A stretch of 64,000 bases of DNA from Anthoceros angustus (Eukaryota; Plantae; Anthocerotophyta). The notes beneath the pieces were generated by a model. That model did not search any database. It worked only from the letters and a program-made list of their open reading frames with translations, and was not told where the DNA came from. The DNA lies in the NCBI GenBank assembly GCA_010909165.1, contig MU008177.1:496001-560000 (forward strand), read 5' to 3'. Shown here piece after piece: positions 15,172-62,996 of this stretch. The translations under genes and the position numbers were made by a program. Numbering within the stretch: the first letter of the stretch is position 1; each line of letters starts with the position of its first letter.

Positions 15172-15189
15172 TTCTCCTCCCTTGCTTCC

Positions 15190-24715: not shown

Positions 24716-24842
24716 TACTCACCCTAGCAGCCTTAGGGCCGATTTAAGATAACCTTAAAATCTTAGCCCAAAAATTATTGTCTTACTATTTTCTGAACAT
24801 TTTTCTTCTTCTATCTCAAAATAGCTTAGGTCATCCCTGCCT

Positions 24843-31395: not shown

Positions 31396-31610
31396 AAGGA
31401 AGATGAAAATAGAAGGAGCTTATACATAAGATAGAAAAGTTTTACTAGGGACCAAGGAAGATGAAAATAGAAGGAGCTTATATAAATAAGATAGAAAAGT
31501 TTTTCCAAAGTCCATTTGAGGATGATCATCATGGAATCGAATACCATGCATCCATACGATGCGATAAGATTAATACAAAGGAGTCGAGAAGATTAATACA
31601 AAGGAGTTTA
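31396..31610. repeat. 58-bp x2 and 23-bp x2-3 tandem repeats between protease units (also ~33855-34095 and ~36360-36605)
   Basis: AAGGAAGATGAAAATAGAAGGAGCTTATA.. at 31396 and 31454; AAGATTAATACAAAGGAGTCGAG at 31566 and 31589. Confidence 0.85.
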
Positions 31611-31797
31611 GAGTTAAGATTTGGTCAACTATGTGCGTGAGAGATTTATATATCATCCGTTTCATTGTGAAATACAACGTTCACGTTGATAGAAATATAC
31701 TCAAATGAGCATTACAAATTATAACTTAGTTGTGAAATCAAATTCTCACATTAATAAATTACCCAAATGAGTATTACAAACTATGACAACTTAAAAT

Positions 31798-38901: not shown

Positions 38902-41900
38902 TGTGGAAGACCACATGTACACTAACCTCCCCTGGACTGTTGATTTGAATGTTTTTTTTTGTTTTTCTTATGTTTTGTGTGATGGAGTGCTTAGGAAATG
39001 TCCGAGGCAAGGCCTTTTATACTAAAATGGTCCTTGGCCCATGACAATATTACTTTTACAAATAATTAGTCCTTGGGCCTCGAACTGAATATCGCCGGCT
39101 AGAAGGTCCTTGGACCTTGGGATTTTAGGAATAAAATTGTCTATATAAGGTGGGGATCCTTCATTCGAGGGGCCTGTGAACAAGTGGAGACGTGGCACCT
39201 CCGGAGAAGTTCGAAGCTAGCGGAGAGGTATAAGCGGAGAGAGGTGAGGCTAGGGCGGTCAAGAGAGAGGCAGCAAGAAGCGAGCAACAGCCACCGCTAG
39301 AAGCAGCCACCACGGTGGTGGAGCTACCACGGTGGTGGAGCGCACCGTCGCCACCACGGTGGTGGAGCCGGCCATCGTCGGAAGAAGGACCCAAGGTGGG
39401 GAAGCCACCGTCGAGCAGAGAGGGGATGCAACCCCTCGATTCCGTGAAGCAACCAGGATTGTCCACGGAGCCGCATACCTTCACAAAGTTGTGCTCGAGG
39501 AAATGAGCAAGGCGGAGGCTAGAGCATGGATGGAGGAACGCATGTTTGGCTGTCCAGGATGAGGAGCGAGGAAACGGCGCAGGGGCAGACGGACGCGCCT
39601 CCTAGGAGGAGTGAAGGGACCTCGGATAGCGGGAGTGAGGTGGAGATATTAAGGGAGGATCTTTGGATCGAGGCGTGGTAGGAGAGCGAGGGAACACCCA
39701 TGGGCTAGGCGGCCACGAGGCGGGCGCTGATTTTAGAGGGAGCGGCATCATAGGTCGTGGCTTTCACTTGGATTAGAGGATAAGGTGCTAGGAAGCTTGT
39801 GAATATAGATACCGAATTGGTAGGCGCGCTGGTAGGTTAGCCATCTTAGACACCGGAGGTAGGTTAGCCATCTTTAGACACTGGAGGTAGGTTAGCCATC
39901 TTAGACATCGAAAGTGAGCTATGCGCGGCCGATGTATAAGAGACCCTTGAGTGTCTCTCTAGACAATTTCGTGTGAGCTCCCGTGTCGAATTTGTGCGCG
40001 TGGTTGGTTGGAGACATCCGATCGATGATGGGCGATTGTGTCTTGTCCTCTCGTCACAAGAGGGCCGGGAGATCCTGGATGGTCGAGAGCCGAGTGACCA
40101 AGCTCCGTCCGGGGTGACTAGTGGTGAAGGGTGCTCAATGCATGCCAGGAGAGGGAAATTCTGCTGGGGACCGGGTGAGATCGCGGGGAATCGCCTGTGG
40201 AGCCGACCACTGTTTTTTTTCCTTTCCCAACCCACTGCCTAACCACAGTGTCTAATCCCAAGGAGGGGTCTGTGGCTGAGGTCTGTGGCCCAGGAGGGGT
40301 CTGTGTGGCCCAAGGAGGGGTCTGTGGCCCAAGGAGGTCTGTGTGGCCCGAGGAGGGGTCTGTGGCCCAAGGAGGTCTGTGTGGCGAGGTCTGTGGCCCA
40401 AGAGAGGGGATCTGTGGGAACATCTTGTGCGCGGTGGTGTAAGGGGTCCTAGAAGAAAGGGGTGAGTGAGTCGTGAAGGGAGTCTAGGAAGTGGTGAGCG
40501 AGAGTCCGGAACGCGGAACGCCGAGGAAGGTTGGGAATAAATTGTGGGGTCGAGGAAATCGATGGAGTGAGGTGCCGCGCGGCGTGGCCATGGTGTGCAT
40601 CCACCGTGAGCTCGGGTGTGAATCCACATGAGTGTGACTTGGTACATGTGAATCGCATAGGACCATAGCCCTTAACGAGGCGTGGTAGGAGAGCGAGGGA
40701 ACACCCATGGGTCTAGGGCTGGCCACGAGGCGCTACTGATTTTAGAGGAGCGCATCATAGGTCGAGGCTTTCACTTGGATTAGAGGATAAGGTGCTAGGA
40801 AGCTTGTGAACCTATAGATACCGAATTGGTAGGCGCGCTGGTAGGTTAGCCATCTTTAGACACCGGAGGTAGGTTAGCCATCTTTAGACACCGGAAAGTG
40901 AGCGAAAGTGAGCTATGGCTGATGTATAAGAGACCCTTGAGTGTCTCTCTAATGCACAATTTCTGTGTGAGCTCCCGTGTCGAATTTGTGCGTTGGTTGG
41001 AGACATCCGATCGATGATGGGCCGATTCAGCCTCGCCAAGAGGGCCGGGAGATCCTCGGATGGTCGAGAGCCGAGTGACCAAGCTCCGTCCGGGGTGACT
41101 AGTGGTGAAGGGTGCTCAATGCATGCCAGGAGAGGGAAATTCTGCTGGGGACCGGGTGAGATCGCGGGGAATCGCCTGTGGAGCCGACCACTGTTTTTTT
41201 CCTTTCCCAACCCACTGCCTAACCACAGTGTCTAATCCCAAGGAGGGGTCTGTGGCTCGGGAGGTCTGTGGCCCAGGAGGGGTCTGTGTGGCCCAAGGAG
41301 GGGTCTGTGGCCCAAGGAGGTCTGTGTGGCCCGAGGAGGTCTGTGGCCCAAGGAGGTCTGTGTGGCGAGGTCTGTGGCCCAAGAGAGGTCTGTGGCCTAA
41401 GAGAGGGGATCTGTGGGAACATCTTGTGCGCGGTGGTGTAAGGGGTCCTAGAAGAAAGGGGTGAGTGAGTCGTGAAGGGGAGTCTAGGAAGTGGTGAGCG
41501 AGAGTCCGGAACGCGGAACGCCGAGGAAGGTTGGGAATAAATTGTGGGGTCGAGGAAATCGATGGAGTGAGGTGCCGCGCGGCGTGGCCATGGTGTGCAT
41601 CCACCGTGAGCTCGGGTGTGAATCCACATGAGTGTGACTTGGTGTACATGTGAATCGCATAGGACCATAGCCCTTAACGAGGCGTGGTAGGAGAGCGAGG
41701 GAACACCCATGGGCCGCAGGTGGGGGCCACGAGGCGCGCTGATTTTAGAGGGGAGGCATCATAGGTCGAGGCTTTCACTTGATTAGAGGATAAGGTGCTA
41801 GGAAGCTTGTGAACCTATAGATACCGAATTGGTAGGCGCGCGTGGTAGGTTAGCCATCTTTAGACACCGGAGGTAGGTTAGCCATCTTTAGACACCGGAG

Positions 41901-43018
41901 GTAGGTTAGCCATCTTAGACACCGGAAAGTGAGCTGGTGCCTGGATGTATAAGAGACCCTTGAGTGTCTCTCAGACAATTTCTGTGTGAGCTCCCGTGTG
42001 TCGAATTTGTGCGCGTGGTTGGTTGGAGGCATCCGATCGATGATGGGCCGATTGTGTGCAGGCCCTTCCTCGTCACAAGAGGGCCGGGAGATCCTCGGAT
42101 GGTCGAGAGCCGAGTGACCAAGCTCCGCGTCTGGAGTGACTAGTGGTGAAGGGTGCTCAATGCATGCCAGGAGAGGGAAATTTCAGGGACCGGGTGAGAT
42201 CACGGGTGTGCGGATCGCCTGTGGAGCCGACCAGCTGTTTTTTTCCTTTCCCAACCCGCTGTCTAACCAGATTGTGTCTAATCCCAAGGAGGTCTGTGGC
42301 CTGTGAGGGGGTCATGTGGCCCGAGGAGGGGTCTGTGTGGCCCAAGGAGGGGTCCGTGTGGCCCAAGGAGGGGTCTGTGGCCTGGGAGGGGTCTGTGGCC
42401 CAAGAGAGGGGTCTGTGTGAGAGGTGGTGAGAGAGGAGGATCTGGGAACATCTTGTGCGCGGTGTATGAGGTCCTAGAAGAAAGGGGTGAGTGAGTCGTG
42501 TGAAGGGAGTCTAGGAAGTGGTGAGCGAGAGTCCGGAACGCGGAACCGAGGAAGGTTGGGAATAAATTGTGGGGTCGAGGAAATCAGCGACGGAGTGAGG
42601 TGCCGCGCGCGCGTGGCCATGGTGTGCATCCACCGCTGAGCTCGGGTGTGAATCCACATGAGTGTGACTTGGTGTACATGTGAATCATATAGGACCATAG
42701 CCCTTAACGAGCGAGCAGGGAACCGGGCGCCAAATAGTCGATCGCGACGCTGGCCGGGCGGTCGGGTGGGTCCACCACAGGTGGTTGAATCCACCACCGC
42801 GTGGCGAACCCACCACGGCGGTGGTGGAATCCACCACGCGTGGTCGAACTTACCACGGTAGTTGATTATGGAGGTAGGAACCGATTGTAGGAGGACTAGA
42901 ATCCATAGTTTTAGAACATCTTGACACAAAACCATTCCCTTGGGATCGAATCCTAGGACTATAACGACATAGAGGGTAAATGTGGCCTCTTTGCTCGGAT
43001 GCAAAAACCCATTCCACA
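38902..43018 (+). repeat. Gag-only element LTR 1 (contains a ~1.0 kb block x3; monomer ~2.1 kb)
   Basis: TGTGGAAGACC start, CCATTCCACA end; block anchors ~39674, 40680, 41681. Confidence 0.85.
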
Positions 43019-43105
43019 TTTTGCGCCGGGAATGAAACCGCTGGATTATAGGAAAGACTAACCATAGCTTAGGTGTCTAGTCTTTGAGTGTATTTAGTTT
43101 GGTAG

Positions 43106-44600
43106 ATGGATGCCACGAGTTGAGTCGGAGGTCAGTCAAGTCGGGAAGAAAGCCTCAAGCGGCAACACCCCAAGCTGGAAAGGTTGAAAGGGTTGCTCGG
43201 GAGTTGAGGAGGACCCAATTGGAGGACGACTTGTGGGGAAAAGAAGGGGCAAGGAATCACGGATTTGGGGGTCCGATCTTGGAGCAAGATCCCCAATCTC
43301 GGTCGAGGTACCACGCCAAGAGACCTTGATCCAACCTTGTCTCGACCTCTAGGTGTGCATCCAGCCCCAATCAACCGTGGACGCTGAATCACCATCGCTA
43401 CCATAGCCCCAACCATGTCCACCACATGTGGTGGTCACCACCAAGCAACCTTACCTGCTGTATGGAGAGGAGAAGGGTATGAGGATCGATGAATTTGTTG
43501 AGCGTTTGAGCTGACATTTGCAAACCAGAATGGCGATGCAGATTCAACTGCTCTATGGAGTTCTTCGGGCGGTCCAAAGAAGTGGTACAGCGCGAGTACC
43601 TCAAGTCGCCCACACCCCAACCACCTTTGAAGAATTGAAGAATGCCTGTGAGAGGTTTAGGGGATTGACATGGAGGGCTACGTGTTGTCCAAGCTTGAGA
43701 GGTTACAAAGAGAGAGGAAGGAAACCTTGCAAGCGATGTTGAGAGGTTTCACACCACGTGATCGTAGTGGTCCTCATTCGAGCTGCAGCAATACGGTGGT
43801 TTGCTAAAGGCCTGGTTCTAAGATGGGGAGACACGTAAGGTGGCAAGCGGAGAAGAATTTGGGCAAGGCTATCAAGGCGCTAAATTACGAGGAATCTAAC
43901 TCGCAGGAGATGAAGAAGGCTAAGAAGAGGAAGAAGTCCAAAACGGGAAAAGAAAGGATTCCTCATCGCCCTGGAGAAAGTTCCTCAGAGAGGAAAGCTC
44001 CTCAAGATTCCCTGAGGATTCCATGGAGGAAGAAACGAGTGACAGCTTGGAGGAAGATTCGATGGGGAGCGCGAGGAAAAGAAGAAATCAAGGGTGAAGT
44101 GGAAGGGAAGAAGAGCTGCATGGGGAACAAAGAGTCGAGGGCGAAACAAGAGGCGTTGTATGCAAAAAAGATGCGAGCAAGCAAGGAGGGAGGCCGAGGC
44201 GGCAACCAAGAAAGTGGAACAACACGTGGAGGCGAGAGGCCAAACCCAATTCAAGAGGGGAAGGGAGACGATGGCCTCGAATGAGAAGGGAGAAAGAGCT
44301 TCACAAATCGACGATCCGAAATTTGTGAGTATCCGGCAATCGCCAAATTCCTCAAAACCTCTCTAAGGTACAAGAACAAAGTTCGTCCATTACTCGCGAC
44401 CGTCGTAAGACACAAGACCAAGTTATATCGAATGGGACCGACGGTAACAAGGTGGTGACGACCGAGGTGGATGGGTCCGCTCAGTCCCGGAGGTTTTCCA
44501 CAATGGTTCCATCCACCGCAGATTGAATGGTCGCTTTGCCAACCGAGTTGGTTGGCGAGTTGAAAAGTATTATCAATAAGTTGGCGAGGACGCCAACAAA
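43106..44600 (+). pseudogene. gag, unit 1
   Basis: PYLLYG..GYEDPDEFVER, TTFEELKNA..ERFRG, LSKLERLQ, RWFAKGL, MGRHVRWQAEKNLGKAIKA, then a Lys/Glu/Ser-rich tail. Confidence 0.75.
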
Positions 44601-44601
44601 T

Positions 44602-44612
44602 GAGAAGGGGAG
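44602..44612 (+). promoter_or_regulatory. Polypurine tract GAGAAGGGGAG (also before LTR starts at 49008, 53869, 54831, 55910, 60681)
   Basis: Purine run 2 nt upstream of TGTGGAAG; the same LTR start abuts unrelated DNA at 38902, which confirms the boundary. Confidence 0.85.
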
Positions 44613-44614
44613 TA

Positions 44615-47403
44615 TGTGGAAGACCACATGTACACTAACCTCCCCTATTGGTTTGAATGTTTTTTTGTTTTTCTTATGTTTTGTGTGATGGAGTGCTTAG
44701 GAAATGTCCGAGGCAAGGCCTTTTATACTAAAATGGTCCTTGGCCCATGACAATATTACTTTTACAAATAATTAGTCCTTGGGCCTCGAACCTGTGAATA
44801 TCAGTTAGAAGGTCCTTGGACCTTGGGATTTTAGGAATAAAATTGTCTATATAAGGTGGGGATCCTTCATTCAAAGAACAGGGGCCCAGGGAACAAGTGG
44901 AGACGCCTGCAGGAGAAGTTCGAAGCTAGCGAGAGGTATAAGCGGAGAGAGGTGAGGCTAGGGCCGTGGTCAAGAGAGGCAACCAAGAAGGTAGAGCAAC
45001 ACCACCGAAGTGCCCACCGCTAGAAGCGACCACGGTGGTGGAGCCACCACCGTCATGAAGCAGCCACCACGGTGGTGGAGCCGCCATCGTCGGAAGAAGG
45101 ACCCAAGGTGGGGAAGCCACCGTCGAGCCGAGGAGGGGATGCAACCCCTCGATTCGAAGCAACCAGCCTGGATTGTCCACGGAGCCGGCATACCCTTCAC
45201 AGTTGTGCTCGAGGAAATGAGCAAGGCGGAGGCTAGAGCATGGATGGAGGAACGACGCTTGGTCCGGATGAGGAGCGAGGAACGGCGCAGGACTGACCGC
45301 CTCCTAGGAGGAGTGAAGGGACCTCGGATAGCGGAGTGAGGTGGAGATATTAAGGGAGGATCTTCGGATCGAGGCGTGGTAGGAGAGCGAGGGAACACCC
45401 ATGGGCGCTGGCACAGGGAGGGCTGATTTTAGAGGGAGCATCATAGGTCGAGGCTTTCACTTGGATTAGAGGATAAGGTGCTAGGAAGCTTGTGAATTTG
45501 TAGATACCGAATTGGTAGGCGCGTGGTAAGTTAGCCATCTTTAGACACCGGAGGTAGGTTAGCCATCTTTAGACACCGGGTGAGAGCTAGTGAGCTGACT
45601 GCTGATGTATAAGAGACCCTTGAGTGTCTCTCTTAATGCATACCTGTGTGAGCTCCCGTGTGTCGAATTTGTGCGTGGTTGGTTGGAGACATCCAATCGA
45701 TGATGGGCTTCGGTGTCATCCTCGTCACAAGAGGGCCGGGAGATCCTGGATGGTCGAGAGCCGAGTGACCAAGCTCGATCTGGGTGACTAGTGGTGAAGG
45801 GTGCTCAATGCATGCTAGAGAGGGAAATTCTGGGGACCGGGTGAGATCGCGGTGTGCGAATCGCCTGTGGAGCCGACCAGCTTTTTTTCCTTTCCCAACC
45901 CACGCCCAACTGGATTGTCCACGGAGCCGCATACCCTTCACAGTTGTGCTCGAGGAAATGAGCAAGGCGGAGGCTAGAGCATGGATGGAGGCCTTTGGCT
46001 GTCCAGGATGAGGAGCGAGGAAAGCGTCGCGGAGGCGAGCGCCTCCTAGGAGGAGTGAAGGGACCTCGGATAGCGGAGTGAGGTGGAGATATTAAGGGAG
46101 GATCTTCGGATCGAGGCGTGGTAGGAGAGGGGAACACCCATGGGCGGCTAGGCGGCCGTGGCAAGGATTTTAGAGGGAGCATCATAGGTCGAGGCTTTCA
46201 CTTGGATTAGAGGATAAGGTGCTAGGAAGCTTGTGAATAGATGAATTGGTAGGCGCCATGGTAGGTTAGCCATCTTTTAGGTAGTTAGCCATCTTTAACA
46301 CGGAGGTAGGTTAGCCATCTTTAGACACCGGAAAGTGAGCTATGGCGTGACGGATGTATAAGAGACCCTTGAGTGTCTCTCTTGCAGACAATTTCGTGTG
46401 AGCTCCCGTGTGTCGAATTTGTGCGTGGTTGGTTGGAGACATCCAATCGATGATGGGGTGATTCGGTGTCTCCTCTCGTCACAAGAGGGCCGGGAGATCC
46501 CCGGATGGTCGAGCCGAGTGACCAAGCTCCTGGGTGACTAGTGGTGAAGGGTGCTCAATGCATGCTAGAGAGGGAAATTCTGGGGACCGGGTGAGATCAG
46601 TGTGAATCGTGGAGCCGACCACTGTTTTTCCTTTCCCAACCACTGCCTAACCAGATTGTGTCTAATCCCAAGGAGGGTCTGTGTGGCCTGGAGGGGTCAT
46701 GTGGCCCGAGGAGGGTCTGTGTGGCCCAAGGAGGTCTGTGGCCCAGGAGGGTCTGTGGCTCGGGAGGGTCTGTGTGGCCCAAGGAGGTCTGTGGCCCAAG
46801 AGAGGAGGACCTAAGAGAGGAGGATCTGTGGGAACATCTTGTGCGGTGGTGTATGGAGGTCTTAGAAGAAAGGGGTGAGTGAGTCGTGTGAAGAGGAGTC
46901 TAGGAAGTGGTGAGCGAGAGTCCGGAAACGCGGAACCGAGGAAGGTTGGGAATAAATTGTGGGGTCGAGGAAAGCCGATGGAGTGAGGTGCCGCGGCGGC
47001 GCGGGCCATGGTGTGCATCCACCGTGAGCTCGGGTGTGAATCCACATGAGTGTGACTTGGTGTACATGTGAACTGCATAGGACCATAGCCCTTAACGAGC
47101 GGGTGGGAACCGGCGCCAATAGTCGATCGCGACGCTGCTGCGCCGCGGCGGGTGGGTCCACCACGGTGGTTGGATCCCCACCGCGGTGGCGAACCCATCC
47201 ACCACGGCGGAATCCACCACGGCGGTGGTCGAACTTACCACGGTAGTTGATTATGGTTAGGAACTAATTGTAGGAGGACTAGAATCCATAGTTTTAGAAC
47301 ATCTTGACACAAAACCATTCCCTTGGGATCGAATCCTAGGACTATAACGACATAGAGGGTAAATGTGGCCTCTTTGCGTCTTCGGATGCAAAACCATTCC
47401 ACA
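44615..47403 (+). repeat. Gag-only element LTR 2
   Basis: TG..CA termini as in LTR 1; internal duplication near 45905-46330; followed by TTT-TGGCGCTGTCGGGAA. Confidence 0.85.
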
Positions 47404-47496
47404 TTTTGGCGCTGTCGGGAATGAAACCGCTGTCGATTATAGGAAAGACTAACCATAGCTTAGGTGTCTAGTCTTTGAGTGTATTTAGTTTGGTAG

Positions 47497-48995
47497 ATGG
47501 ATGCCACGAGTTGAGCCGAGGGTGAGTCAAGTCGGGAAGAGAAGCCTCAAGCGAACACCAAAGCGGAAAGGTTGAGAGGGTTGAAATCGGGAGTTGAGGA
47601 GGACCCAATTGGAGGACGACTTGGGGAAGAAGGGGAGTAAGGAATCACCGGGATTTGGGGTCCGATCTTGTTGAGCAAGATCCCCAATCCCCGGTCTGAG
47701 GTACCACGGCCGAGACCTTGGTCCAACCTTGTCTCGACCTCCTCCTAGGTGTGTGTGCACAACCCAATCAACTTGGAACACGTCATGGAGTCGCCCAATC
47801 ACCAACATAGCCGCCAGTTCCATCAAGGCTGGCACCACACAACCTTACCTGCTGGGAGGAGAAGGGGTATGAGGATGACGAATTTGTTGAGCGCTTTGAG
47901 CACATTTGCAAACCAGAATCGGGTACACATTCAACTGCTCTATGGAGTTCTTCGGGCGGTCCAAAGTGGTACAGCGCAGTACCTCAAGTCGCCACACCCC
48001 AACCACCTTTGAAGAATTGAAGAATGCCTTCGTGAGAGGTTTAGGGGATTGACATGGAGGGCTACGTGTTGTCCAAGCTTGAGAGGTTACAAGAGAGAGG
48101 AAGGAAACCTTGCAAGCGTATGTTGAGAGGTTTCACCACGTGATCGTAGTGGTCCTCATTCAGCAGTAATACGGTGGTTCGCTAAAGGCCCGGGTTCTAA
48201 GATGGGGAGACACGTAAGGTGGCAAGCGGAGAAGAATTTGGGCAAGGCTATCAAGGCGGCGCTAAATTACGAGGAATCTAACTCAGGAGATGAAGAAGGC
48301 TAAGAAGAAGAAGAAGTCCAAAACGGGAAAAGAAAGGGATTCTCATCCCTGAGAAAGTTCCTCAGAGAGGAAAGCTCCTCAAGATTCCCTGTGAGGATTC
48401 CATGGAGGAAGAAACGAGTGACTTGGAGGAAGATTCGCCGATGGGGAGCGCCCGAGGAAAAGAAGAAATCAAGGGTGAAGTGGAAGGAAGAAGAGCTGCT
48501 GGGGAACAAAGAGTCATGAGGGCGAAACAAGAGGCGTTGTATGCAAAAAAGATGCGAGCAAGCAAGGAGGAGGCCGAGGCGGCAACCAAGAAAGTGGAAC
48601 AACACAAGTGGAGCGAGAGGGCCAAACCCAATTCAAGAGGGGAAGGGGAGACGAGATGGCCTCGAATGAGAAGGGGAGAAAGAGCTTCACAAATCGACGA
48701 TCCGGAAATTTGTGAGTATCCGGCACGCCAAATTCTCAAAACCTCTCTAAGGTACAACAAAGCGTCATTCATTACTCGCGACCGCTCAGAAGACACAAGA
48801 CCAAGTTATATCGAATGGGACCGGACGGTAACAACGGTTATGGGTGACGACGAAAGGTGGATGGGTCCGCTCGTGGTCCCGGAGGTTTTCCACAATGGTT
48901 CCATCCACCGCAGATTTGAATGGTCGCTTTGCCAACCGAGTTGGTTGGCGAGTTGAAAAGTATTATCAATAAGTTGGCGAGGACGCCAACAAATG
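47497..48995 (+). pseudogene. gag, unit 2
   Basis: Homologous to unit 1; internal region 47404-49007 (1604 bp). Confidence 0.75.
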
Positions 48996-49007
48996 AGAAG
49001 GGGAGTA

Positions 49008-52000: not shown

Positions 52001-52260
52001 GTCGGTGGGTCCACCATGGGTTGAATCCACCACCGGTGGCGAATCCACCACGGCGGTGGTGGAATCCACCACGGCGGTGGTCGAACTTACCACGGTAGTT
52101 GATTATGGCTGGGTAGGAACTAATTGTAGGAGGACTAGAATCCATAGTTTTGGAACATCTTGACACAAAACCATTCCCTTGGGATCGAATCCTAGGACTA
52201 TAACGACTTATGGGTAAATGTGGCCTCCTTGCGTCTCTGGATGCAAACACCCATTCCACA
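49008..52260 (+). repeat. Gag-only element LTR 3
   Basis: Same termini; internal duplications restart near 49826 and 51700. Confidence 0.85.
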
Positions 52261-52263
52261 TTT

Positions 52264-52281
52264 TGGCGCCGCTGCCGGGGA
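52264..52281 (+). promoter_or_regulatory. Primer-binding site TGGCGCCGCTGCCGGGGA (tRNA-Asp-like)
   Basis: 3 nt after the LTR-terminal CA; 17/18 match to TGGCGCCGTTGCCGGGGA, the complement of the plant tRNA-Asp(GUC) 3' end used by Athila. Other units read TGGCGCTGTCGGGAA. Confidence 0.75.
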
Positions 52282-52361
52282 GTGAAACTGCTGTCAGGAT
52301 TGTAGGAAAGACTAACCATAGCTTATGTGTCTAGTTTTTTAGTGTTTATCTGGCTTGGTAG

Positions 52362-53855
52362 ATGGATGCCACGAGTTGAGTGAGGAGTCAGTCGGGAAGA
52401 GAAGCCTCAAGCGCAACACCAAGCGAAAGATTGAGAGGGTTGCTCGGGAGTTGAGGAGGACCCAATTGGAGGACGACTTGTGGGGAAGGAAGGGGTAAGG
52501 AATCACGATTTGGGGTCCGATCTTGTTGGAGCAAGATCCCCAATCTCGGTCGGACGAGGTACCACGGCCGAGGAACCTTGGTCCAAACCTTGTCTCGACC
52601 TCTTCTAGGTGTGTGCGCAATCAGCCCCAATCAACTCGGACACGCTGGTCAACCACGCTACCACATAGCCACGTCATGTCCACCATCACGGCGGTGGTCA
52701 CCACCAAGCAACCTTACCTGCTGTATGGAGGGAAAGGGTATGAGGATCCCGATGAATTTGTTGAGCGTTGAGCTGACATTTGCAAACCAGAATCGGGTGA
52801 TGCACGCATTCAATGTCTATGGAGTTCTTCGGTCCAAAGAAGTGGTACAGCGAGTACCTGTCACCACACCCCAACCACCTTTGAAGAATTGAAGAATGCC
52901 TTCCGTGAGAGGTTTAGGGGATTGACATGGAGGGCTACGTGTTGTCCAAGCTTGAGAGGTTACAAAGAGAGAGGAAGGAAACCTTGCAAGCGATGTTGAG
53001 AGGTTTCACCACGTGATCGTAGTGGTCCTCATTCGAGCAGCACGGTGGTTCGCTAAAGGCCCGGTTCTAAGATGGGGAGACACGTAAGGTGGCAAGCGGA
53101 GAAGAATTTGGGCAAGGCTATCAAGGCGCTAAATTACGAGGAATCTAACTCGCAGGAGATGAAGAAGGCTAAGAAGACAGAAGAAGTCCAAAACGGGAAA
53201 AGAAAGGGATTCCTCATCGCCCCTGGAGAAAGTTCCTCAGAGAGGAAAGCTCCTCAAGATTCCCGAGGATTCCATGGAGGAAGAAACGAGTGACACTTGG
53301 AGGAAGATTCACGATGGGGAGCGCCGAGGAAAAGAAGAAATCAAGGGGTGAAGTGGAAGGGAAGAGCGCATGGGGAACAAAGAGCGAGGGCGAAACAAGA
53401 GGCGTTGTATGCAAAAAGATGCGGAGCAAGCAAGGAGGGAGGCCGAGGCAACCAAGAAAGTGGAACAACATGTATGGAGGCGAGAGGGCCAAACCCAATT
53501 CAAGAGGGGAAGGGAGACGAGATGGCCTCGAATGAGAAGGGAGAAAGAGCTTCACAAAATCGACGATCCGAAATTTGTGAGTATCCGGCACCGCCAAATT
53601 CCTCAAAACCTCTCTAAGGTACAAGAACAAAGCTGTCCATTACTCGCGACCGCTCAGAAGACACAAGACCAAGTTATATCGAATGGGACCGGACGGTAAC
53701 AACGCGGTGACGATCGAAAGGTGTGGATGGGTCCGCGTGGTCCCGGAGGTTTTCCACAATGGTTCCATCCGCAGATTTGAATGGTCGCTTTGCCAACCGA
53801 GTTGGTTGGCGAGTTGAAAAGTATTATCAATAAGTTGGCGAGGACGCCAACAAAT
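52362..53855 (+). pseudogene. gag, unit 3
   Basis: YGGKGYEDPDEFVER etc.; internal region 52261-53868 (1608 bp). Confidence 0.75.
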
Positions 53856-53868
53856 GAGAAGGGGAGTA

Positions 53869-55909
53869 TGTGGAAGACCACATGTACACTAACCTCCCTC
53901 GACTGTTGGTTTGAATGTTTTTTTGTTTTTCTTATGTTTTGTGTGATGGAGTGCTTAGGAAATGTCCGAGGCAAGGCCTTTTATACTAAAATGGTCCTTG
54001 GCCCATGACAATATTACTTTTACAAATAATTAGTCCTTGGGCCTCGAACTGTGAATATCGGTGCTAGAAGGTCCTTGGACCTTGGGATTTTAGGAATAAA
54101 AATTGTCTATATAAGGTGGGGATCCTTCATTCAAAGAACAGGGGCCTGGAAGAAGTCCAAAACGGGAAAAGAAAGGGATTCCTCATCGCCCCTGGAGAAA
54201 GTTCCTGTGAGAGGAAAGCTCCTCAAGATTCCCGAGGATTCCATGGAGGAAGAAACGAGTGACACTTGGAGGAAGATTCGATGGGGAGCGCCGAGGAAAA
54301 AGAAGAATCAAGGGTGAAGTGGAAGGGAAGAGCGCGTGGGGAACAAAGAGTCGAGGGCGAAACAAGAGGCGTTGTATGCAAAAAGATGGAGCAAGCAAGG
54401 AGGGAGGCCGAGGCGGCAACCAAGAAAGTGGAACAACACAAGTGGAGGCGAGAGGGCCAAACCCAATTCAAGAGGGGAAGGGAGATAGATGGCCTCGAAT
54501 GAGAAGGGAGAAAGAGCTTCACAAAATCGACGATCTCGAAATTTGTGAGTATCCGGCACCGCCAAATTCCTCAAAACCTCTCTAAGGTACAAGAACAAAG
54601 CGTCATTCATTACTCGCGACCGCTCGTACACAAGACCAAGTTATATCGAATGGGACCGGACGGTAACAACGGTTATGGGTGACGAGAGTGGTGGATGGGT
54701 CCGCTCGGTCCCGGAGGTTTTCCACAATGGTTCCATCCACAGATTGAATGGTCGCCAACCGAGTTGGTTGGCGAGTTGAAAAGTATTATCAATAAGTTGG
54801 CGAGGACGCCAACAAATGAGAAGGGGAGTATGTGGAAGACCACATGTACACTAACCTCCCCGACTTGGTTTGAATGTTTTTTTGTTTTTCTTATGTTTTG
54901 TGTGATGGAGTGCTTAGGAAATGTCCGAGGCAAGGCCTTTTATACTAAAATGGTCCTTGGCCCATGACAATATTACTTTTACAAATAATTAGTCCTTGGG
55001 CCTCGAACTGAATATCGCCGCTAGAAGGTCCTTGGACCTTGGGATTTTAGGAATAAAAATTGTCTATATAAGGTGGGGATCCTTCATTCAACAGGGGCCT
55101 GTGAACAAGTGGAGACTGGCACCTCCGGAGAAGTTCAGAAGCTAGGAGAGGTATAAGCGGAGAGAGGTGAGGCTAGGGCCGTGGTCAAGAGAGAGGCAGT
55201 GCAAATAAGAAGGACAGGAAGAAGTCCAAAACGGGAAAAGAAAGGGATTCCTCATCGCCCCTGGAGAAAGTTCCTCAGAGAGGAAAGCTCCTCAAGATTC
55301 CCGAGGATTCCATGGAGGAAGAAACGAGTGACTTGGAGGAAGATTCGATGGGGAGCGCACGAGGAAAAGAAGAAATCAAGGGTGAAGTGGAAGGGAAGAA
55401 GAGTCACATGGGGAACAAAGAGTCTGAGGGCGAAACAAGAGGCGCTATGCAAAAAGATGCGAGCAAGCAAGGAGGGAGGCCGAGGCAACCAAGAAAGTGG
55501 AACAACATGTATGGGAGGCGAGAGGCTGACCCAATTCAAGAGGGGAAGGGAGACGAGATGGCCTCGAATGAGAAGGGAGAAAGAGCTTCACAAAATCGAC
55601 GATCTCGAAATTTGTGAGTATCCGGCACCGCCAAATTCCTCAAAACCTCTCTAAGGTACAAAGAATGTCATTCCATTACTCGCGACCGCTCGTAAGACAC
55701 AAGACCAAGTTATATCGAATGGGACCGGACGGTAATAAACGGTTATGGGTGACGATCGAAAGGTGGATGGGTCCGCTCGGTCCCGGAGGTTTTCCACAAT
55801 GGTTCCATCCACCGCAGATTTGAATGGCCTTTGCCAACCGAGTTGGTTGGCGAGTTGAAAAGTATTATCAATAAGTTGGCGAGGACGCCAACAAATGAGA
55901 AGGGGAGTA
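53869..55909 (+). repeat. Two truncated units: LTR 5' part fused to the gag 3' half plus PPT
   Basis: LTR starts at 53869 and 54831 jump at ~54148 and ~55212 into GAAGAAGTCCAAAACGGG of gag. Confidence 0.8.
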
Positions 55910-58900
55910 TGTGGAAGACCACATGTACACTAACCCTCCCCGACTTGGTTTGAATGTTTTTTTTGTTTTTCTTATGTTTTGTGTGATGGAGTGCTTAGGA
56001 AATGTCCGAGGCAAGGCCTTTTATACTAAAATGGTCCTTGGCCCATGACAATATTACTTTTACAAATAATTAGTCCTTGGGCCTCGAACTGAATATCGCC
56101 GCTAGAAGGTCCTTGGACCTTGGGATTTTAGGAATAAAAATTGTCTATATAAGGTGGGGATCCTTCATTCAAAGAAGGGGCCTGTGAACAAGTGGAGACG
56201 CCTGCACCTCCGGAGAAGTTCGAAGCTAGCGGAGAGGTATAAGCGGAGAGAGGTGAGGCTAGGGCCGTGGTCAAGAGAGGCAGCAAACCAAGAAGGGGTA
56301 GAGCAACAACCACCGCAGGGTCAAATACCACTTGGGGAAGCAGCCACCACGGTGGTGGAGCCACCACCGTCAGGGGCAGCCACCACGGTGGTGGAGCCGC
56401 CATCGGAAGAAGGACCCAAGGTGGGGAAGCCACCGTGACAGAGGAGGGGATGCAACCCCTCGATTCCGTGAAGCAACCAGCCTGGATTGTCCACGGAGCC
56501 GGGCATACCTTCACAAAGTTGTGCTCGAGGAAATGAGCAAGGCGGAGGCTAGAGCATGGATGGAGGAACGCACGCTTTGGCTGTCCGGATGAGGAGCGAG
56601 GAAACGCGGCGCATGAGACGACGGCGCCTCCTAGGAGGAGTGAAGGACCTGGATGGAGTGAGGTGGAGATATTAAGGGAGGATCTTCGGATCGAGGCGTG
56701 GTAGGAGAGCGAGGGAACACCCATGGGCCGCAGGGCTAGGCGGCCATGAGGCAAGCGCTGATTTTAGAGGGAGCGCATCATAGGTCGAGGCTTTCACTTG
56801 GATTAGAGGATAAGGTGCTAGGAAGCTTGTGAATTTGTAGATACCGAATTGGTAGGCGCGCTGGTAGTTAGCCATCTTTAGACACCGGAGGTAGGTTAGC
56901 CATCTTAGACACCGGAGGTAGGTTAGCCATCTTTAGACACCGAAAGTGAGCTGCTGAGCCGGATGTATAAGAGACCCTTGAGTGTCTCTGCATAATTCTG
57001 TGTGAGCTCCGTGTGTCGAATTTGTGCGTGGTTGGTTGGAGACATCCAATCGATGATGGGCTGATTCGTGGCCGCCTCTCGCCACAAGAGGGCCGGGAGA
57101 TCCTCGGATGGTCGAGAGCCGAGTGACCAAGCTCCGCATCTGGGTGACTAGTGGTGAAGGGTGCTCAATGCATGCCAGAGAGGGAAATTCGCTGGGGACC
57201 GGGTGAGATCGCGGGTGTGCGAATCGCCTGTGGAGCCGACCACTGTTTTTTTTCCTTTCCCAACCCACTGCCTAACCACAGTGTCTAATCCCAAGGAGGG
57301 TCTGGGCCTGTGAACAAGTGGAGACGCCTGCACCTGGAGAAGTTCGGGAAGCTAGCGGAGAGGTATAAGCGGAGAGAGGTGAGGCGGGTCAAGAGAGGCA
57401 GCAAATCAAGAAGGGTAGAGCAACAGCCACCGGTCAAAACAACCACCGCTGGGAAGCCACCACGGTGGTGGAGCCACCACCGTCAGCGCACCAGTGGTGG
57501 AGCCGCCATCGTCGGAAGAAGGACCCAAGGTGGGGAAGCCACCGGAGCGTCAGAGAGGGGATGCAACCCCTCGATTCCGTGAAGCAACCAGCCTGGATTG
57601 TCCACGAGCCGGGCATACCTTCAAAGTTGTGCTCGAGGAAATGAGCAAGGAGGCTAGAGCATGGATGGAGGAACGCACGCTTTGGCTGTCCGGATGAGGA
57701 GCGAGGAAACGTGCAGGGGCGAGAGACGGCGCCTCCTAGGAGGAGTGAAGGACCCTGAAAGGGAGTGAGGTGGAGATATTAAGGGAGGATCTTCGGATCG
57801 AGGCGTGGTAGGAGAGCGAGGGAACACCCATGGGCCGCAGGGCTAGGCGCTGAGGCAAGCTGATTTTAGAGGGGAGGCATCATAGGTCGAGGCTTTCACT
57901 TGGATTAGAGGATAAGGTGCTAGGAAGCTTGTGAATTTGTAGATACCGAATTGGTAGGCGCGTGGTTAGCCATCTTTAAACACCGGAGGTAGGTTAGCCA
58001 TCTTTAGACACTGGAAAGTGAGCTATGGCCACGGCCGATGTATAAGAGACCCTTGAGTGTCTCTCTTAACAATTCTGTGTGAGCTCCGTGTGTCGAATTT
58101 GCGTGCGTGGTTGGTTGGAGACATCCAATCGATGATGGGCTGATTCGTGCCGCCCTCGTCACAAGAGGGCCGGGAGATCCTGGATGGTCGAGAGCCGAGT
58201 GACCAAGCTCCGTCTGGGTGACTAGTGGTGAAGGGTGCTCAATGCATGCCAGGAGAGGGAAATTCTGGGGACCGGGTGAGATCGCTGGTGCGAATCACTG
58301 TGGAGCCGACCACTGTTTTTTCCTTTCCCAACCCACTGCCTAACCAGATTGTGTCTAATCCCAAGGAGGGTCTGTGGCTGTGGAGGGCCCAAGAGGAGGG
58401 TCTGTGTGGCCCAAGGAGGTCTGTGGCCCAAGGAGGGGTCTGTGGCCCAAGAGAGGTCTGTGGCCAAGAGAGGAGGATCTGTGGGAACATCTTGTGCGCG
58501 GTGGTGTATGAGGTCCTAGAAGAAAGGGGGTGAGTGAGTCGTTGTGTGAAGGGGAGTCTAGGAAGTGGTGAGCGCGAGAGTCTGGAAACGCGGAACGCTG
58601 AGGAAGGTTGGGAATAAATTGTGGGGTCAGAGGAAATCAGCGACGGAGTGAGGTGCCGCGGCGTGCGTGGCCATGGTGTGCATCCACCAGTGAGCTCTGG
58701 GTGTGAATCCACATGAGTGTGACTTGGTGTACATGTGAATCTGTGCATAGGACCATAGCCCTTAACGAGCGGGGAACCGGCCAAATAGTCGATCGCGACG
58801 CGCGCGGTCGGGTGGGTTCCACCGTGGTTGATCACCACCGCGGTGGAACCCACCACGGTGGTGGAATCCACCACGGCGTGGTCGAACCACCACGGTAGTT

Positions 58901-59052
58901 GATTATGGTAGGAACCGATTGTAGGAGGACTAGAATCCATAGTTTTAGAACATCTTGACACAAAACCATTCCCTTGGGATCGAATCCTAGGACTATAACG
59001 ACATAGAGGGTAAATGTGGCCTCTTTGCCTTCGGATGCAAAACCATTCCACA
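55910..59052 (+). repeat. Gag-only element LTR 4
   Basis: Same termini; ~1 kb internal duplication restarting near 57303; PBS at 59056. Confidence 0.85.
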
Positions 59053-59142
59053 TTTTGGCGCTGTCGGGAATGAAATGTCAGATTATAGGAAAGACTAACC
59101 ATAGCTTAGGTGTCTAGTCTTTGAGTGTATTTAGTTTGGTAG

Positions 59143-60668
59143 ATGGATGCCACGAGTTGAGTCGGAGGATCGAGTCAGTCGGGAAGAAAGCCTCAAGCCG
59201 CACAACACCAAGGAAAAGATTGAGGAGGGTTGCGGATCGGGAGTTGAGGAGGACCCAATTGAGGACGACTTGTGGGGAAGGAAGGAATCATCGATTCGGG
59301 GTCCGATCTGTTGAGCAAGATCCCCAATCTGGTCGAGGTACCACGGCCGAGACCTTGGTCCAAACCTTGTCTTCCGACCTCTCTAGGTGTGTGCGCATCC
59401 GCAGCCAATCAATTGTGGAATCGCCGCATCAATCACCACCAACATAGCCGCGTCATGTCCACCATGCCGGTGGTGGTCACCACCAAGCAACCTTACCTGC
59501 TGTATGGAGAGGGAAAGGGTATGAGGATCCCGACGAATTTGTTGAGCGTTTTGAGCAGCTGACATTTGCAAAACCAGCGGGCGGCGATGCGATTCAACTG
59601 CTCTATGGAGTTCTTCGGGCGGTCCAAAGAAAGTGGCAGACGCGATTAAGTCACCACACCCCAACCACCTTTGAAGAATTGAAGAATGCCTTCCGTGAGA
59701 GGTTTAGGGGATTGACATGGAGGGCTACGTGTTGTCCAAGCTTGAGAGGTTACAAAGAGAGAGGAAGGAAACCTTGCAAGCGTATGTTGAGAGGTTTCAT
59801 ACCACGTGATCGTAGTGGTCCTCATTCGAGCCGCAGTAATACGGTGGTTCGCTAAAGGCCCGGTTCTAAGATGGGGAGACACGTAAGGTGGCAAGCGGAG
59901 AAGAATTTGGGCAAGGCTATCAAGGCGGCGCTAAATTACGAGGAATCTAACTCGCAGGAGATGAAGAAGGCTAAGAAGATGAAGAAGTCCAAAACGGGAA
60001 AAGAAAGGGATTCCTCATCGCCCTCGGGAGAAAGTTCCTCAGAGAGGAAAGCTCCTCAAGATTCTGAGGATTCCATGGAGGAAGAAACGAGTGACTGGAG
60101 GAAGATTCACGATGGGGAGCGCACGGAGGAAAAGAAGAAATCAAGGGTGAAGTGGAAGGAAGAAGAGTCTATGGGGAACAAAGAGTCGAGGGCGAAACAA
60201 GAGGCGCTATGCAAAAAAGATGCGGAGCAAGCAAGGAGGGAGGCCGAGGCGGCAACCAAGAAAGTGGAACAACATGTATGGAGGCGAGAGGGCCAAACCC
60301 AATTCAAGAGGGGAAGGGAGACGAGATGGCCTCGAATGAGAAGGGAGAAAGAGCTTCACAAAACCGACGATCCGAAATTTGTGAGTATCCGGCACCGCCA
60401 AATTCCTCAAAACCTCTCTAAGGTACAAAGAAAGGCGTCATTCATTACTCGCGACTGCTCAGAAGAAGACACAAGACCAAGTTATATCGAATGGGACCGG
60501 ACGGTAACAAACGGTTATGGGTGACGAAGGTGGATGGGTCCGCTCAGTGGTCCCGGAGGTTTTCCACAATGGTTCCATCCACCGCAGATTTGAATGGTCG
60601 CTTTGCCAACCGAGTTGGTTGGCGAGTTGAAAAGTATTATCAATAAGTTGGCGAGGACGCCAACAAAT
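59143..60668 (+). pseudogene. gag, unit 4
   Basis: ORF 59871..60524 gives the longest open stretch; internal region 59053-60680. Confidence 0.75.
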
Positions 60669-60680
60669 GAGAAGGGAGTA

Positions 60681-62995
60681 TGTGGAAGACCACATGTACA
60701 CTAACCCTCCCTCGACTTGGTTTGAATGTTTTTTTTGTTTTTCTTATGTTTTGTGTGATGGAGTGCTTAGGAAATGTCCGAGGCAAGGCCTTTTATACTA
60801 AAATGGTCCTTGGCCCATGACAATATTACTTTTACAAATAATTAGTCCTTGGGCCTCGAACTGTGAATATCAAAGCTAGAAGGTCCTTGGACCTTGGGAT
60901 TTTAGGAATAAAAATTGTCTATATAAGGTGGGGATCCTTCATTCAAAGAACAGGGCCTGTGAACAAGTGGAGACGCTGCACCTCCGGAGAAGTTCGAAGC
61001 TAGCGGAGAGGTATAAGCGGAGAGAGGTGAGGCTAGGGCTGTGGTCAAGAGAGAGGCAAATCAAGAAGGGAGAAAGTTCCTCAGAGAGGAAGGAAGAAGA
61101 AGGACCCAAGGTGGGGAAGCCACCACGGTGGTGGAGCCACCACCGTCATGAAGCAGCCACCACGGTGGTGGAGCCGCCATCGCGAAGAAGGACCCAAGGT
61201 GGGGAAGCCACCGCCGAGCGTCAGGAGGGGATGCAACCCCTCGATTCCGTGAAGCAACCACTGGATTGTCCACGGAGCCGGCATACCCTTCACTGTGTTG
61301 TGCTCGAGGAAATGAGCAAGGCGGAGGCTAGAGCATGGATGGAGGAACGCAGCTTGGCGCCCGGATGAGGAGCGAGGAAACGTGCGCAGGGGCAGTAGAC
61401 GGACGGCGCCTCCTAGGAGGAGTGAAGGGACCCTGATAGCGGGAGTGAGGTGGAGATATTAAGGGAGGATCTTTCGGATCGAGGCGTGGTAGGAGAGCGA
61501 GGGAACACCCATGGGCCGCAGGCGGCCCACGAGGCGGGGCTGATTTTAGAGGGAGCGCATCATAGGTCGAGGCTTTCACTTGGATTAGAGGATAAGGTGC
61601 TAGGAAGGAACTATAGATACCGAATTGGTAGGCGCCATGGTAGGTTAGCCATCTTTAGACACCGGAGGTAGGTTAGCCATCTTTAGACACCGGAGGTAGG
61701 TTAGCCATCTTAGACACCGGAAAGTGAGCTATGGCGCCGCGGATGTATAAGAGACCCTTGAGTGTCTCTCTTAATGCATACCCTGTGAGCTCCGTGTCGA
61801 ATTTGTGCGCGTGGTTGGTTGGAGACATCCAATCGATGATGGGGCGATTCGCAGGTCCTCTCGCACAAGAGGGCCGGGAGATCCTGGATGGTCGAGAGCC
61901 GAGTGACCAAGCTCCGTCCGGGGTGACTAGTGGTGAAGGGTGCTCAATGCATGCCAGGAGAGGGAAATTCCCGCAGGGGACCGGGTGAGATCGCGGGTGT
62001 GCGAATCGCCTGTGGAGCCGACCAGCTTTTTTTTCCTTTCCCAACCCGCTGTCTAACCAGATTGTGTCTAATCCCAAGGAGGGGTCTGTGGCCCTGGAGG
62101 GGTCTGTGTGGCCCGAGGAGGGGTCTGTGTGGCCCAAGGAGGGGTCTGTGTGGCCCAAGGGGGGGGGTCTCGGGAGGGTGTGTGGCCCAAGGAGGGGTCT
62201 GTGTGGCCCAAGAGAGGTCTGTGGCCCAAGAGAGGAGGATCTGTGGGAACATCTTGTGCGCGGTGGTGGAGGTCTTAGAAGAAAGGGGTGAGTGAGTCGC
62301 CAGTGAAGAGGAGTCTAGGAAGTGGTGAGCGAGAGTCCGGAAACGCGAACGCCGAGGAAGGTTGGGAATAAATTGTGGGGTCGAGGAAATCGCGACGAGT
62401 GAGGTGCCGCGCGCATGCGTGGTGTGCATCCACCGGTGAGCTCGGGTGTGAATCCACATGAGTGTGACTTGGTGTACATGTGAACCGCGGTGCATAGGAC
62501 CATAGCCCTTAACGAGCGTGAAAGGGGAACCGCCAAATAGTCGATCGCGACGCGCAAGCGCCGGGCGTGGGTGGGTTCCACCACGGTGGTCGAACTTACC
62601 ACGGTGGTGGAATCCACCACCGGTGAGCTCGGGTGTGAATCTACATGAGTGTGACTTGGTGTACATGTGAATCGGTGCATAGGACCATAGCCCTTAGAGG
62701 CGTAGCGGGGCAGGCGCCAAATAGTCGATCGCGGCAGCGGCGTCGGTCGGGTGGGTCCACCACGGGGTTGGATCACCGCGGTGGCGAACCCACCACGGTG
62801 GTGGAATCCACCACGGTGGTCGAACCTACACGGTAGTTGATTATGGCCGGGTAGGAACCGATTGTAGGAGGACTAGAATCCATAGTTTTAGAACATCTTG
62901 ACACAAAACCATTCCTTGGGATCGAATCCTAGGACCATAACGACATAGAGGGTAAATGTGGCCTCTTTGCGCCTTGGATGCAAAAACCCATTCCA
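60681..62995 (+). repeat. Gag-only element LTR 5 (terminal)
   Basis: TGTGGAAG start; ends CCATTCCA with no PBS after it and ORF A sequence resuming. Confidence 0.85.
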
Positions 62996-62996
62996 T

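Follow-up and report, generated by a model that had tools for sequence, protein, structure and literature searches.

Tandem arrays of LTR retrotransposons with a single flanking TSD are reported to occur commonly in rice, Arabidopsis, almond, and cotton (PMC11899658), and the non-autonomous families of sugar beet include 97 arrays of 3–21 LTRs, 73 of them retaining TSDs, as well as families in which LTRs of at least 2.1 kb are combined with short internal regions (PMC13570524). Published TR-GAGs are shorter than 4 kb and have one intact GAG ORF (Chaparro et al. 2015, PMC4350172). Here, we analyzed a 64-kb window (the whole stretch of DNA considered), ~24 kb of which is a genuine, old, and decayed head-to-tail array with units that share their LTRs. 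A sequence-only reading had called such an array unusual; given that tandem arrays are already known as common in plants (PMC11899658) and that families with long LTRs and short internal regions have been described (PMC13570524), it is an ordinary finding, and both the kind of structure and the mechanism proposed for it have been published (PMC11899658, PMC13570524).

Organization of the Array

The array extends over positions 38902–62997 of the window, with its LTRs, internal regions, and partial units all on the plus strand. Self-BLAST and junction alignments gave the order LTR-internal region-LTR-internal region-LTR-internal region-(two partial units)-LTR-internal region-LTR, in which four internal regions and five LTRs are complete and two further units are partial; this reproduces the pol-less LTR–gag array with two partial units of the sequence-only reading. 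In the junction alignments, every junction within the array is either LTR–PBS or PPT–LTR without extra flanking sequence, and no additional TSDs are present inside, which is the alternation of n internal regions with n + 1 LTRs by which a tandem LTR-retrotransposon array is recognized.

The LTR borders are sharp: complete LTRs start with TGTGGAAG and run from TGTGGAA to TTCCACA, with the exception of LTR6, in which the terminal CA reads TG. With direct repeats, TG...CA ends, and short terminal inverted repeats, they have the termini of LTR retrotransposons, and a TATA-like TCTATATAAGG is located at ~39143 in LTR1. The present LTRs measure 2.3–4.1 kb and have been enlarged by private tandem duplications. 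LTR1 (38902–43018; 4117 bp) consists of an A segment, three B subrepeats of ~1007 bp each (39669–40675, 40676–41677, and 41678–42711), and a C segment; LTR2 (44615–47403; 2789 bp) has a private duplication with a period of 742 bp (45168–45918 and 45910–46659); and LTR3 (49008–52260; 3253 bp) has two, of ~717 bp (49106–49824 and 49823–50541) and ~459 bp (51243–51701 and 51702–52147). LTR5 (55910–59052; 3143 bp) contains a private duplication with a period of ~1126 bp (56178–57312 and 57304–58382), and LTR6 (60681–62997; 2317 bp) has a single B copy and a ~190-bp duplication. The duplication periods thus differ between LTRs (1007, 742, 717, 459, 1126, and ~190 bp), as do the breakpoints. The earlier observation that the LTRs are longer than the internal region stands as far as their length is concerned, but this length is owed in part to each LTR's own internal tandem duplications. 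The ancestral LTR was probably ~2.1 kb long, with LTR6 nearest to that form, and the monomer would have been ~2.1 + 1.6 + 2.1 = 5.8 kb.

The two partial units (53869–55909) have a period of ~1070 bp, and in each the initial ~280–370 bp of an LTR (53869–~54147 and 54831–~55209) are fused to the final ~690 bp of an internal region (54148–54830 and 55210–55909). The fusion lies at an AAGAAG microhomology, and junction a resembles junction b with an additional deletion of ~100 bp.

Internal Regions and the gag Remnant

The four internal regions are located at 43019–44614 (1596 bp), 47404–49007 (1604 bp), 52261–53868 (1608 bp), and 59053–60680 (1628 bp); the first of them comprises a decayed PBS, a frameshifted gag remnant, a K/E-rich tail, and the PPT. 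The PPT GAGAAGGGGAG is identical upstream of six LTR starts in the junction alignment, and the 60 bp upstream and 26 bp downstream of the LTR start are virtually identical across these six junctions. PBS-like remnants beginning TGGCGC follow a TTT spacer downstream of the ends of LTR1, LTR2, LTR3, and LTR5, so that both PBS and PPT are placed as in an LTR retrotransposon. The PBS has decayed in three of the four units; the best-preserved copy is that of unit 3 (TGGCGCCGCTGCCGGGGA; 52264–52281), 3 nt past LTR3, which agrees with the published tRNA-Asp PBS (PMC2844528) at 17 of 18 bases and is the only match to it in the window.

The 1.6-kb internal region amounts to the frameshifted remnant of a Ty3-type gag, without pol. 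A phmmer search of 1.8 billion proteins returned a single match, a Riccia sorocarpa gag protein (P0001; E = 9.2e-4), and tblastn of this protein gave E = 4.7e-11 in internal region 4 at 59505–60047, the best gag match; the sole detectable relative is a liverwort gag protein of 230 amino acids with 32% identity. It should be noted that the gag homology rests on this phmmer match and the local tblastn rather than on Pfam, as Retrotrans_gag scored E = 0.07–0.1 on stop-free pieces (0.08 on the fragment from internal region 4), short of the Pfam cut-off. No significant Pfam match was obtained with long ORFs from the LTRs or the internal regions, and the array ORFs tested (at least 150 amino acids) yielded no Pfam pol domain. 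Rfam and ARAGORN had no match in the window, and an exact look-up of nine window ORFs (eight from the array and one Copia reverse transcriptase) in the protein collection recovered none of them. The gag named in the sequence-only reading is therefore borne out as homology, but as a frameshifted remnant in each copy: each of the four has its homology divided among reading frames, with one frameshift common to them all. As this common frameshift lies within a stretch that is invariant in the four copies, the units derive from one already-defective progenitor.

Insertion Site

The array interrupts a host repeat, the "ORF A" element. The left flank (37727–38896, plus strand) is 77.5% identical to the minus strand of 16259–17387, and the repeat continues in the right flank (63003–63985, plus strand), where 63163–63985 is 76% identical to the minus strand of 15266–16030. 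When joined, the flanks align across the junction and are collinear with the uninterrupted paralog at ~16270 on the minus strand (77% identical). The putative TSD copies, as read from the plus strand, are GCAGC on the left (38897–38901) and CCAGC on the right (62998–63002), which match at four of five positions; the LTR 3' ends lie 2 nt beyond those first proposed. The earlier claim that a pol-less LTR retrotransposon is arranged here in tandem, with shared LTRs, is supported: the whole array has one insertion site and one putative, near-perfect 5-bp TSD, with an empty site that can be judged only from the 77% paralog.

Divergence among Units

The units differ by 6–10% substitutions in addition to many indels. 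Overall they are nearly equidistant and star-like, with singleton differences far exceeding informative ones, and no clean order of duplication could be extracted from comparisons of the LTRs, the B subrepeats, or the internal regions. Two blocks nevertheless group the units differently: in block 44300–44614, 12 informative sites unite units 1 + 3 versus 2 + 4 with none for either other split, whereas block 43300–43649 has 14 informative sites for 1 + 2 versus 3 + 4, against 5 and 5. Such block-dependent groupings indicate in situ recombination or gene conversion between units and give the array a mosaic history. The partial units have diverged to the same degree as the full ones, and so have most private duplications; at least one subrepeat duplication (B1/B2), at 3–4% versus ~8%, is clearly younger.

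Divergence along the unit is very uneven, from 0.7–2% up to 12–20%, and this unevenness is only partly explained. The low-divergence blocks are the 5' 250 bp of the LTR (to the TATA-like box), its 3' 145 bp, the PPT, and the gag core, and there are runs of 120 bp that are invariant in 4–7 copies. A private in-cis duplicate within LTR3 has the same profile, with 0–4% over the first 200 bp and 6–12% further on, which led us to reject selection among independent family members as the cause. CpG decay is not supported as the driver of the variation either, with a CpG observed/expected ratio of 0.82, few CpG transitions, and a CpG density only weakly correlated with variation. The differences have an indel-to-substitution ratio of 0.25–0.8, a transition/transversion ratio of 1–1.6, and little CpG bias. 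Uniform sequencing noise was rejected as their source, as tandem pairs in the window diverge by anything from 0.4% to 10% and the informative sites are block-specific.

Tandem Duplication across the Window

Direct repeats spaced by at most 6.5 kb cover 78% of the 64-kb window and 67% of the sequence outside the array. They include Copia-derived sequence and a second array of gag remnants at 6489–9887, so that a regional process of duplication at the DNA level exists. A broader reading, which we consider unlikely, is that an unusually active process, operating across the region or the genome, tandemly duplicates several unrelated TE families at a scale of 0.2–6 kb and has the array as its largest product; the copies would decay unevenly and with many indels, centered on clusters of the palindrome CCACCACGGTGGTGG. 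In that case, this would be a bryophyte locus turning retrotransposons into satellite-like higher-order repeats, perhaps pericentromeric.

Origin of the Array

We consider it probable (roughly 0.6) that the locus is an old tandem LTR-retrotransposon array that began with one integrase insertion of a non-autonomous Ty3/gypsy-type element and subsequently grew in place. Integrase would have inserted a single element into another repeat, producing a 5-bp duplication; this element would have had ~2.1-kb LTRs, an Athila-like tRNA-Asp-type PBS, and 1.6 kb of internal sequence in which gag was already broken and pol was missing. LTR–internal units would have been added by unequal homologous recombination between the long LTRs, and tandem duplications of 0.2–1.1 kb mediated by microhomology or short repeats may have generated the private LTR subrepeats and the two partial units. 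The mosaic relationships of the units could result from gene conversion or further unequal exchange, and the whole locus would later have decayed through substitutions and many small indels. The anatomy, the single insertion site, the gag homology, the mosaic history, and the prevalence of tandem duplication in the region are shown by the sequence, whereas we infer this order of events and that recombination gave rise to the first additional unit. The sequence-only reading had offered unequal LTR–LTR recombination or a concatemeric cDNA; either could have produced the array, although we favor unequal LTR recombination. The differing LTR duplications and the microhomology at the partial-unit junction reflect DNA-level events that ignore LTR borders and argue for growth in place.

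Insertion of a concatemer, for which integrase would have inserted a multi-unit cDNA in one step, with decay to follow, is rather unlikely in our view; the cDNA would stem from repeated template switching during reverse transcription or from a transcript reading through a tandem template or 1-LTR circle. It agrees with the single putative TSD, the intact outer LTR termini, and the star-like, nearly equidistant pattern of the units, whether full or partial, and of most private duplications, and the mechanism has been raised as possible (PMC11899658). Such equidistance fits a single burst and counts against stepwise growth in place, in which unequal exchange should leave more hierarchy than is seen, although conversion can erase hierarchy. 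A concatemer leaves the tandem duplication of unrelated TE sequence across the window unexplained, however, and is at odds with duplication breakpoints that are placed arbitrarily and vary from one LTR to the next and with at least one subrepeat duplication (B1/B2) being clearly younger; the block-specific groupings would still call for later in situ recombination. Growth in place, the reading we prefer, has to contend with the only partly explained unevenness of divergence, the imperfect TSD, and an empty site known only from a 77% paralog.

It is quite improbable that the units came from outside, be it as cDNA or 1-LTR circles of other family members recombining homologously with a resident LTR or as family members that inserted into the resident element and then underwent LTR recombination, and that they represent different members of a family instead of duplicates made in place. 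The low-divergence blocks do resemble cis-acting parts conserved among active family members, but the in-cis duplicate of LTR3 is equally uneven, so that the unevenness belongs to the sequence and not to selection between elements; partial units cannot be products of retrotransposition, yet have diverged like full units, and the decayed PBS of three of the four units as well as the lack of additional TSDs also speak against arrival from outside. Still less probable is an artefact of assembly, either as the expansion of a single element or shorter array, which the sequence-only reading had named as the finding that would undo its interpretation, or as noisy long reads laid out in tandem, with copy differences amounting to sequencing error. 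The spectrum of differences is odd for natural decay and the duplication breakpoints look arbitrary, as an artefact might produce; however, a range of 0.4–10% between tandem pairs leaves no uniform noise floor of the size needed, long invariant runs occur in 4–7 copies, and the window is without Ns. Copies 6–10% and many indels apart, with different LTR structures, share derived indels and substitutions block by block (12:0:0 in one block and another grouping elsewhere), which random error cannot yield.

Comparison with Known Systems

With this array, a structure now known as common in seed plants gains a bryophyte-like example, which also shows that a non-autonomous long-LTR element left with no more than a gag remnant is able to build an array of five LTRs. 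It opens no new mechanism and does not settle whether such arrays originate by recombination or concatemer insertion; as the locus records both recombination and conversion among its units, along with many tandem duplications independent of the LTRs, it could help to study how TE arrays become satellite-like DNA.

The element is non-autonomous and LARD/TR-GAG-like, without being a strict TR-GAG. TR-GAGs (PMC4350172) share with it LTRs, a PBS, a PPT, and gag as the sole recognizable coding homology, with protease, RT, RNase H, and integrase absent, and their 5-bp TSD has a putative counterpart here; the label TR-GAG given by the sequence-only reading fails on length and coding capacity, as TR-GAGs are <4 kb with LTRs of ~0.5 kb and an intact GAG ORF, whereas the monomer here is ~5.8 kb with ~2.1-kb LTRs and a gag that is frameshifted in every copy. 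At this size, and with only a broken gag, the element agrees with the definition of LARDs as non-autonomous elements of >4 kb without functional coding capacity (size according to PMC13570524). As in the Athila-lineage FIDEL of peanut (PMC2844528) and ATHILA (bioRxiv 10.64898/2026.03.20.713144), the PBS is complementary to tRNA-Asp (TGGCGCCG(T/C)TGCCGGGGA), and a short AT-rich spacer lies between it and the end of the LTR; a tRNA-Asp/Asn PBS TGGCGCCGTTGCC after a 3–6-bp AT-rich spacer is characteristic of Athila (bioRxiv 10.64898/2026.03.20.713144), and unit 3 has TTT followed by TGGCGCCGCTGCC. Unlike Athila-lineage elements, the array has neither pol nor env, and an assignment to this lineage is by the PBS alone.

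Alternating LTRs and internal regions and shared internal LTRs are also found in the TLI1/TLI2 and IDENTAM tandems (Morales-Diaz et al. 2025, PMC11899658), which as a whole are flanked by one 5-bp TSD (putative in the present array), are mostly Ty3/gypsy, include one rice example inside another TE, and have been discussed in terms of the same two candidate mechanisms. For the most part, those tandems have retained pol domains and are of young age (85–99% LTR identity), whereas the present array is non-autonomous and 6–10% diverged, has five full and two partial LTRs as well as sub-LTR duplications, and belongs to a bryophyte-like genome. It is likewise similar to the sugar beet TA copies (PMC13570524) and to TA-TRIM/Cassandra arrays in being non-autonomous, with 3–21 LTRs and mostly retained TSDs in the former; LTRs of at least 2.1 kb with short internal regions exist among the sugar beet TA families, most traceable ones of which are Ty3/gypsy-derived (PMC13570524). 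In contrast to the sugar beet copies, the array described here comes from another plant lineage, its gag remnant is still recognizable, and its LTRs are inflated by private duplications of ~0.2–1.1 kb.

Anatomy of the Array and Its Insertion Site

Both self-BLAST and a map of the window against the first unit reproduced the alternation of LTRs and internal regions described in the sequence-only reading (38902-62997), including internal lengths of 1596, 1604, 1608, and 1628 bp; the LTR 3' ends had to be moved, as the true ends lie 2 nt farther. The borders are sharp in junction alignments: TGTGGAAGACCACATG opens every LTR and has GAGAAGGGGAGTA immediately before it, and at the six LTR-start junctions the 60 bp upstream and 26 bp downstream of the border are virtually identical. 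At its 3' border each complete LTR carries CCCATTCCACA, followed by TTT and then a PBS-like TGGCGC. LTR6 terminates in CCATG where the others have CCACA, and CCAGC follows directly; the last bases of the left flank are GCAGC.

The proposed rejoining of the flanks was borne out, in that the joined flanks align uninterrupted with the paralogous copy of the host repeat at ~16270 (minus strand); this paralogue is only ~77% identical, so that an empty site is supported, but not to the exact base. The host repeat itself (37727-38895 and 63163-63985, plus strand) has two tandem paralogues at 15266-19705 (minus strand), inverted, ~20 kb away and with 76-78% identity, and a Pfam search of its ORFs found no domain.

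LTR1 is composed of an A segment of 767 bp, three B copies of ~1007 bp each and, last, ~305 bp of C segment. In the remaining LTRs, B is present essentially once, alongside private duplications differing from LTR to LTR, with periods of 742 bp in LTR2, 717 and 459 bp in LTR3, 1126 bp in LTR5, and ~190 bp in LTR6; we infer an ancestral LTR of ~2.1 kb and a monomer of ~5.8 kb. Minisatellites of 17-28 bp are found within B and C, and the near-palindrome CCACCACGGTGGTGG has 56 matches against 0.1 expected (up to two mismatches, both strands), all within the LTRs of the array, in two clusters per LTR (e.g., 39307-39365 and 42772-42858, with equivalents in every array LTR) that coincide with the hypervariable blocks. 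The two partial units represent a ~1070-bp duplication that takes in the final 690 bp of the internal region together with the 280-370 bp at the start of the LTR; an AAGAAG microhomology marks the join. Because these events disregard the LTR borders, they are DNA-level duplications. Long antisense ORFs in the LTRs gave no family matches and are to be expected, the strand being pyrimidine-rich.

The Internal Region

The PBS of unit 3 (52264-52281) shares 17 of 18 bases with the tRNA-Asp PBS tggcgccgttgccgggga published for the Athila-like FIDEL (PMC2844528) and is the sole site of this type within the window; the PBS of the remaining units contains deletions. In the ATHILA lineage such a PBS stands 3-6 bp past the LTR, with an AT-rich spacer between (bioRxiv 10.64898/2026.03.20.713144).

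The internal region has no significant match in Pfam; two of its copies match positions 12-42 of Retrotrans_gag at a nonsignificant E of ~0.08. When 1.8 billion representatives were searched in full by HMMER with a 135-aa piece (59448-59852), one protein was returned (E 9.2e-4), the 230-aa "Retrotransposon gag domain-containing protein" P0001 of the liverwort Riccia sorocarpa, which carries PF03732 (E 1.9e-15) and Ty3_capsid (E 1.3e-9); no other relative of this gag was detectable. With P0001 as query, tblastn matched the window at 59505-60047 (E 4.7e-11), and other reading frames hold more collinear gag pieces, for example LDYKHIVLKKLSALKRKKKETL versus IDMEGYVLSKLERLQRERKETL. By sequence similarity, this match and the collinear pieces in different frames identify the internal region as the remnant of a Ty3-type gag, broken up by frameshifts. 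The frameshift between FRERF and DMEGY sits in a stretch invariant across all four copies, indicating that the units share a progenitor that was itself already defective. The absence of pol noted earlier holds, as 1.6 kb leaves no room for it and the array ORFs of at least 150 aa that were tested have no pol domain.

Divergence and History of the Units

Pairwise, the units differ by 6-9% substitutions, and every 100 bp holds ~3 indel events. Whether the A segment, C segment, B copies, or internal regions are compared, the relationships come out nearly star-like, the first two B copies of LTR1 (3-4%) being the only clearly younger pair. Informative sites are specific to blocks: 12 sites in 44300-44614 group units 1 and 3 against 2 and 4, with 0 for the alternatives, and 14 sites in 43300-43649 group 1 and 2 against 3 and 4, the two alternatives having 5 sites each. 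This mosaicism shows in-place recombination or gene conversion between units.

Divergence along the unit is strikingly uneven, with 12-20% in 43101-43649 and 0.7-2% in 43650-43950 in all six unit pairs. Conserved cis-acting parts of independently replicated family members were considered and rejected as the cause: a private in-cis duplicate in LTR3 has the same profile, and the unevenness is thus intrinsic to the sequence. GC content accounts for part of it (Spearman 0.49).

Across all tandem pairs of the window, the indel-to-substitution ratio is 0.25-0.8 and ts/tv ~1-1.6, with little CpG effect, and this spectrum holds at each divergence level from 0.4% to 10%; either an unusual spectrum of mutation or long-read errors left in the assembly may lie behind it. 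Being odd for natural decay, it is what could speak for the array as an assembly artefact, which we nevertheless regard as very improbable, since tandem pairs of the same window span 0.4% to 10% divergence, runs of ~120 bp are invariant across 4-7 copies, no two LTRs are structurally alike, and random sequencing error is unable to produce shared variants specific to blocks.

Regional Tandem Duplication and the Origin of the Extra Units

The window is TE-rich eukaryotic DNA, with a strand switch of purine skew at ~21-36 kb; a search for tRNA and Rfam families found none. Direct-repeat pairs (at least 300 bp, at most 6.5 kb apart) cover 78% of the window; outside the array, the share is 67%. Examples lie at 1-4128, 10697-16061, 16261-20140, 24839-27245, and 29384-36721. 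The pairs span several unrelated TE-derived sequences, including Copia-derived sequence, the host repeat (15268-19705), and a second gag remnant; DNA-level tandem duplication is therefore a general process at work here. The second gag remnant (6489-9887, minus strand; WEALKAAFLNRFRGL to YSQEQALDWFVSGL), which the Riccia protein picked up in tblastn, is unrelated to that of the array and tandem with periods of ~370-1330 bp. A Copia-type element lies at ~21.8-29.6 kb, its coding remnants (21805-24024 and 28563-29639) interrupted and partly duplicated in tandem; they retain gag_pre-integrase (E 3.9e-13), RVT_2 (E 3.7e-57), and integrase SH3 (E 2.1e-27).

Such a process would also have generated the extra LTR-internal units, and DNA-level tandem duplication is the most economical source for them. 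Insertion of the array in one step as a concatemer, with which the near-star phylogeny of the units is compatible, seems to us unlikely; DNA-level duplication remains our preferred reading.

Comparison with Known Tandem Arrays

In rice, Arabidopsis, almond, and cotton, tandem LTR retrotransposon arrays with shared internal LTRs and a single flanking TSD, one of them within another TE, were reported to be common, with both mechanisms left open (Morales-Diaz et al. 2025; PMC11899658). In sugar beet, 97 tandem copies from 38 nonautonomous families contain 3-21 LTRs, 73 of the 97 retaining TSDs, and some families combine LTRs of at least 2.1 kb with short internal regions; the same study makes the case that TRIM, LARD, and TR-GAG grade into one another (PMC13570524). 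The observations of the sequence-only reading stand, and its interpretation does so only in part. The label TR-GAG, defined by a size below 4 kb and a single intact GAG ORF (PMC4350172), does not apply to a monomer of ~5.8 kb with a frameshifted gag, and the features called unusual are not so against this literature. Possible genome-wide interest attaches only to the uneven decay, rich in indels, and to the surplus of tandem duplication across the region; the array itself is an additional case of an already described type of structure.
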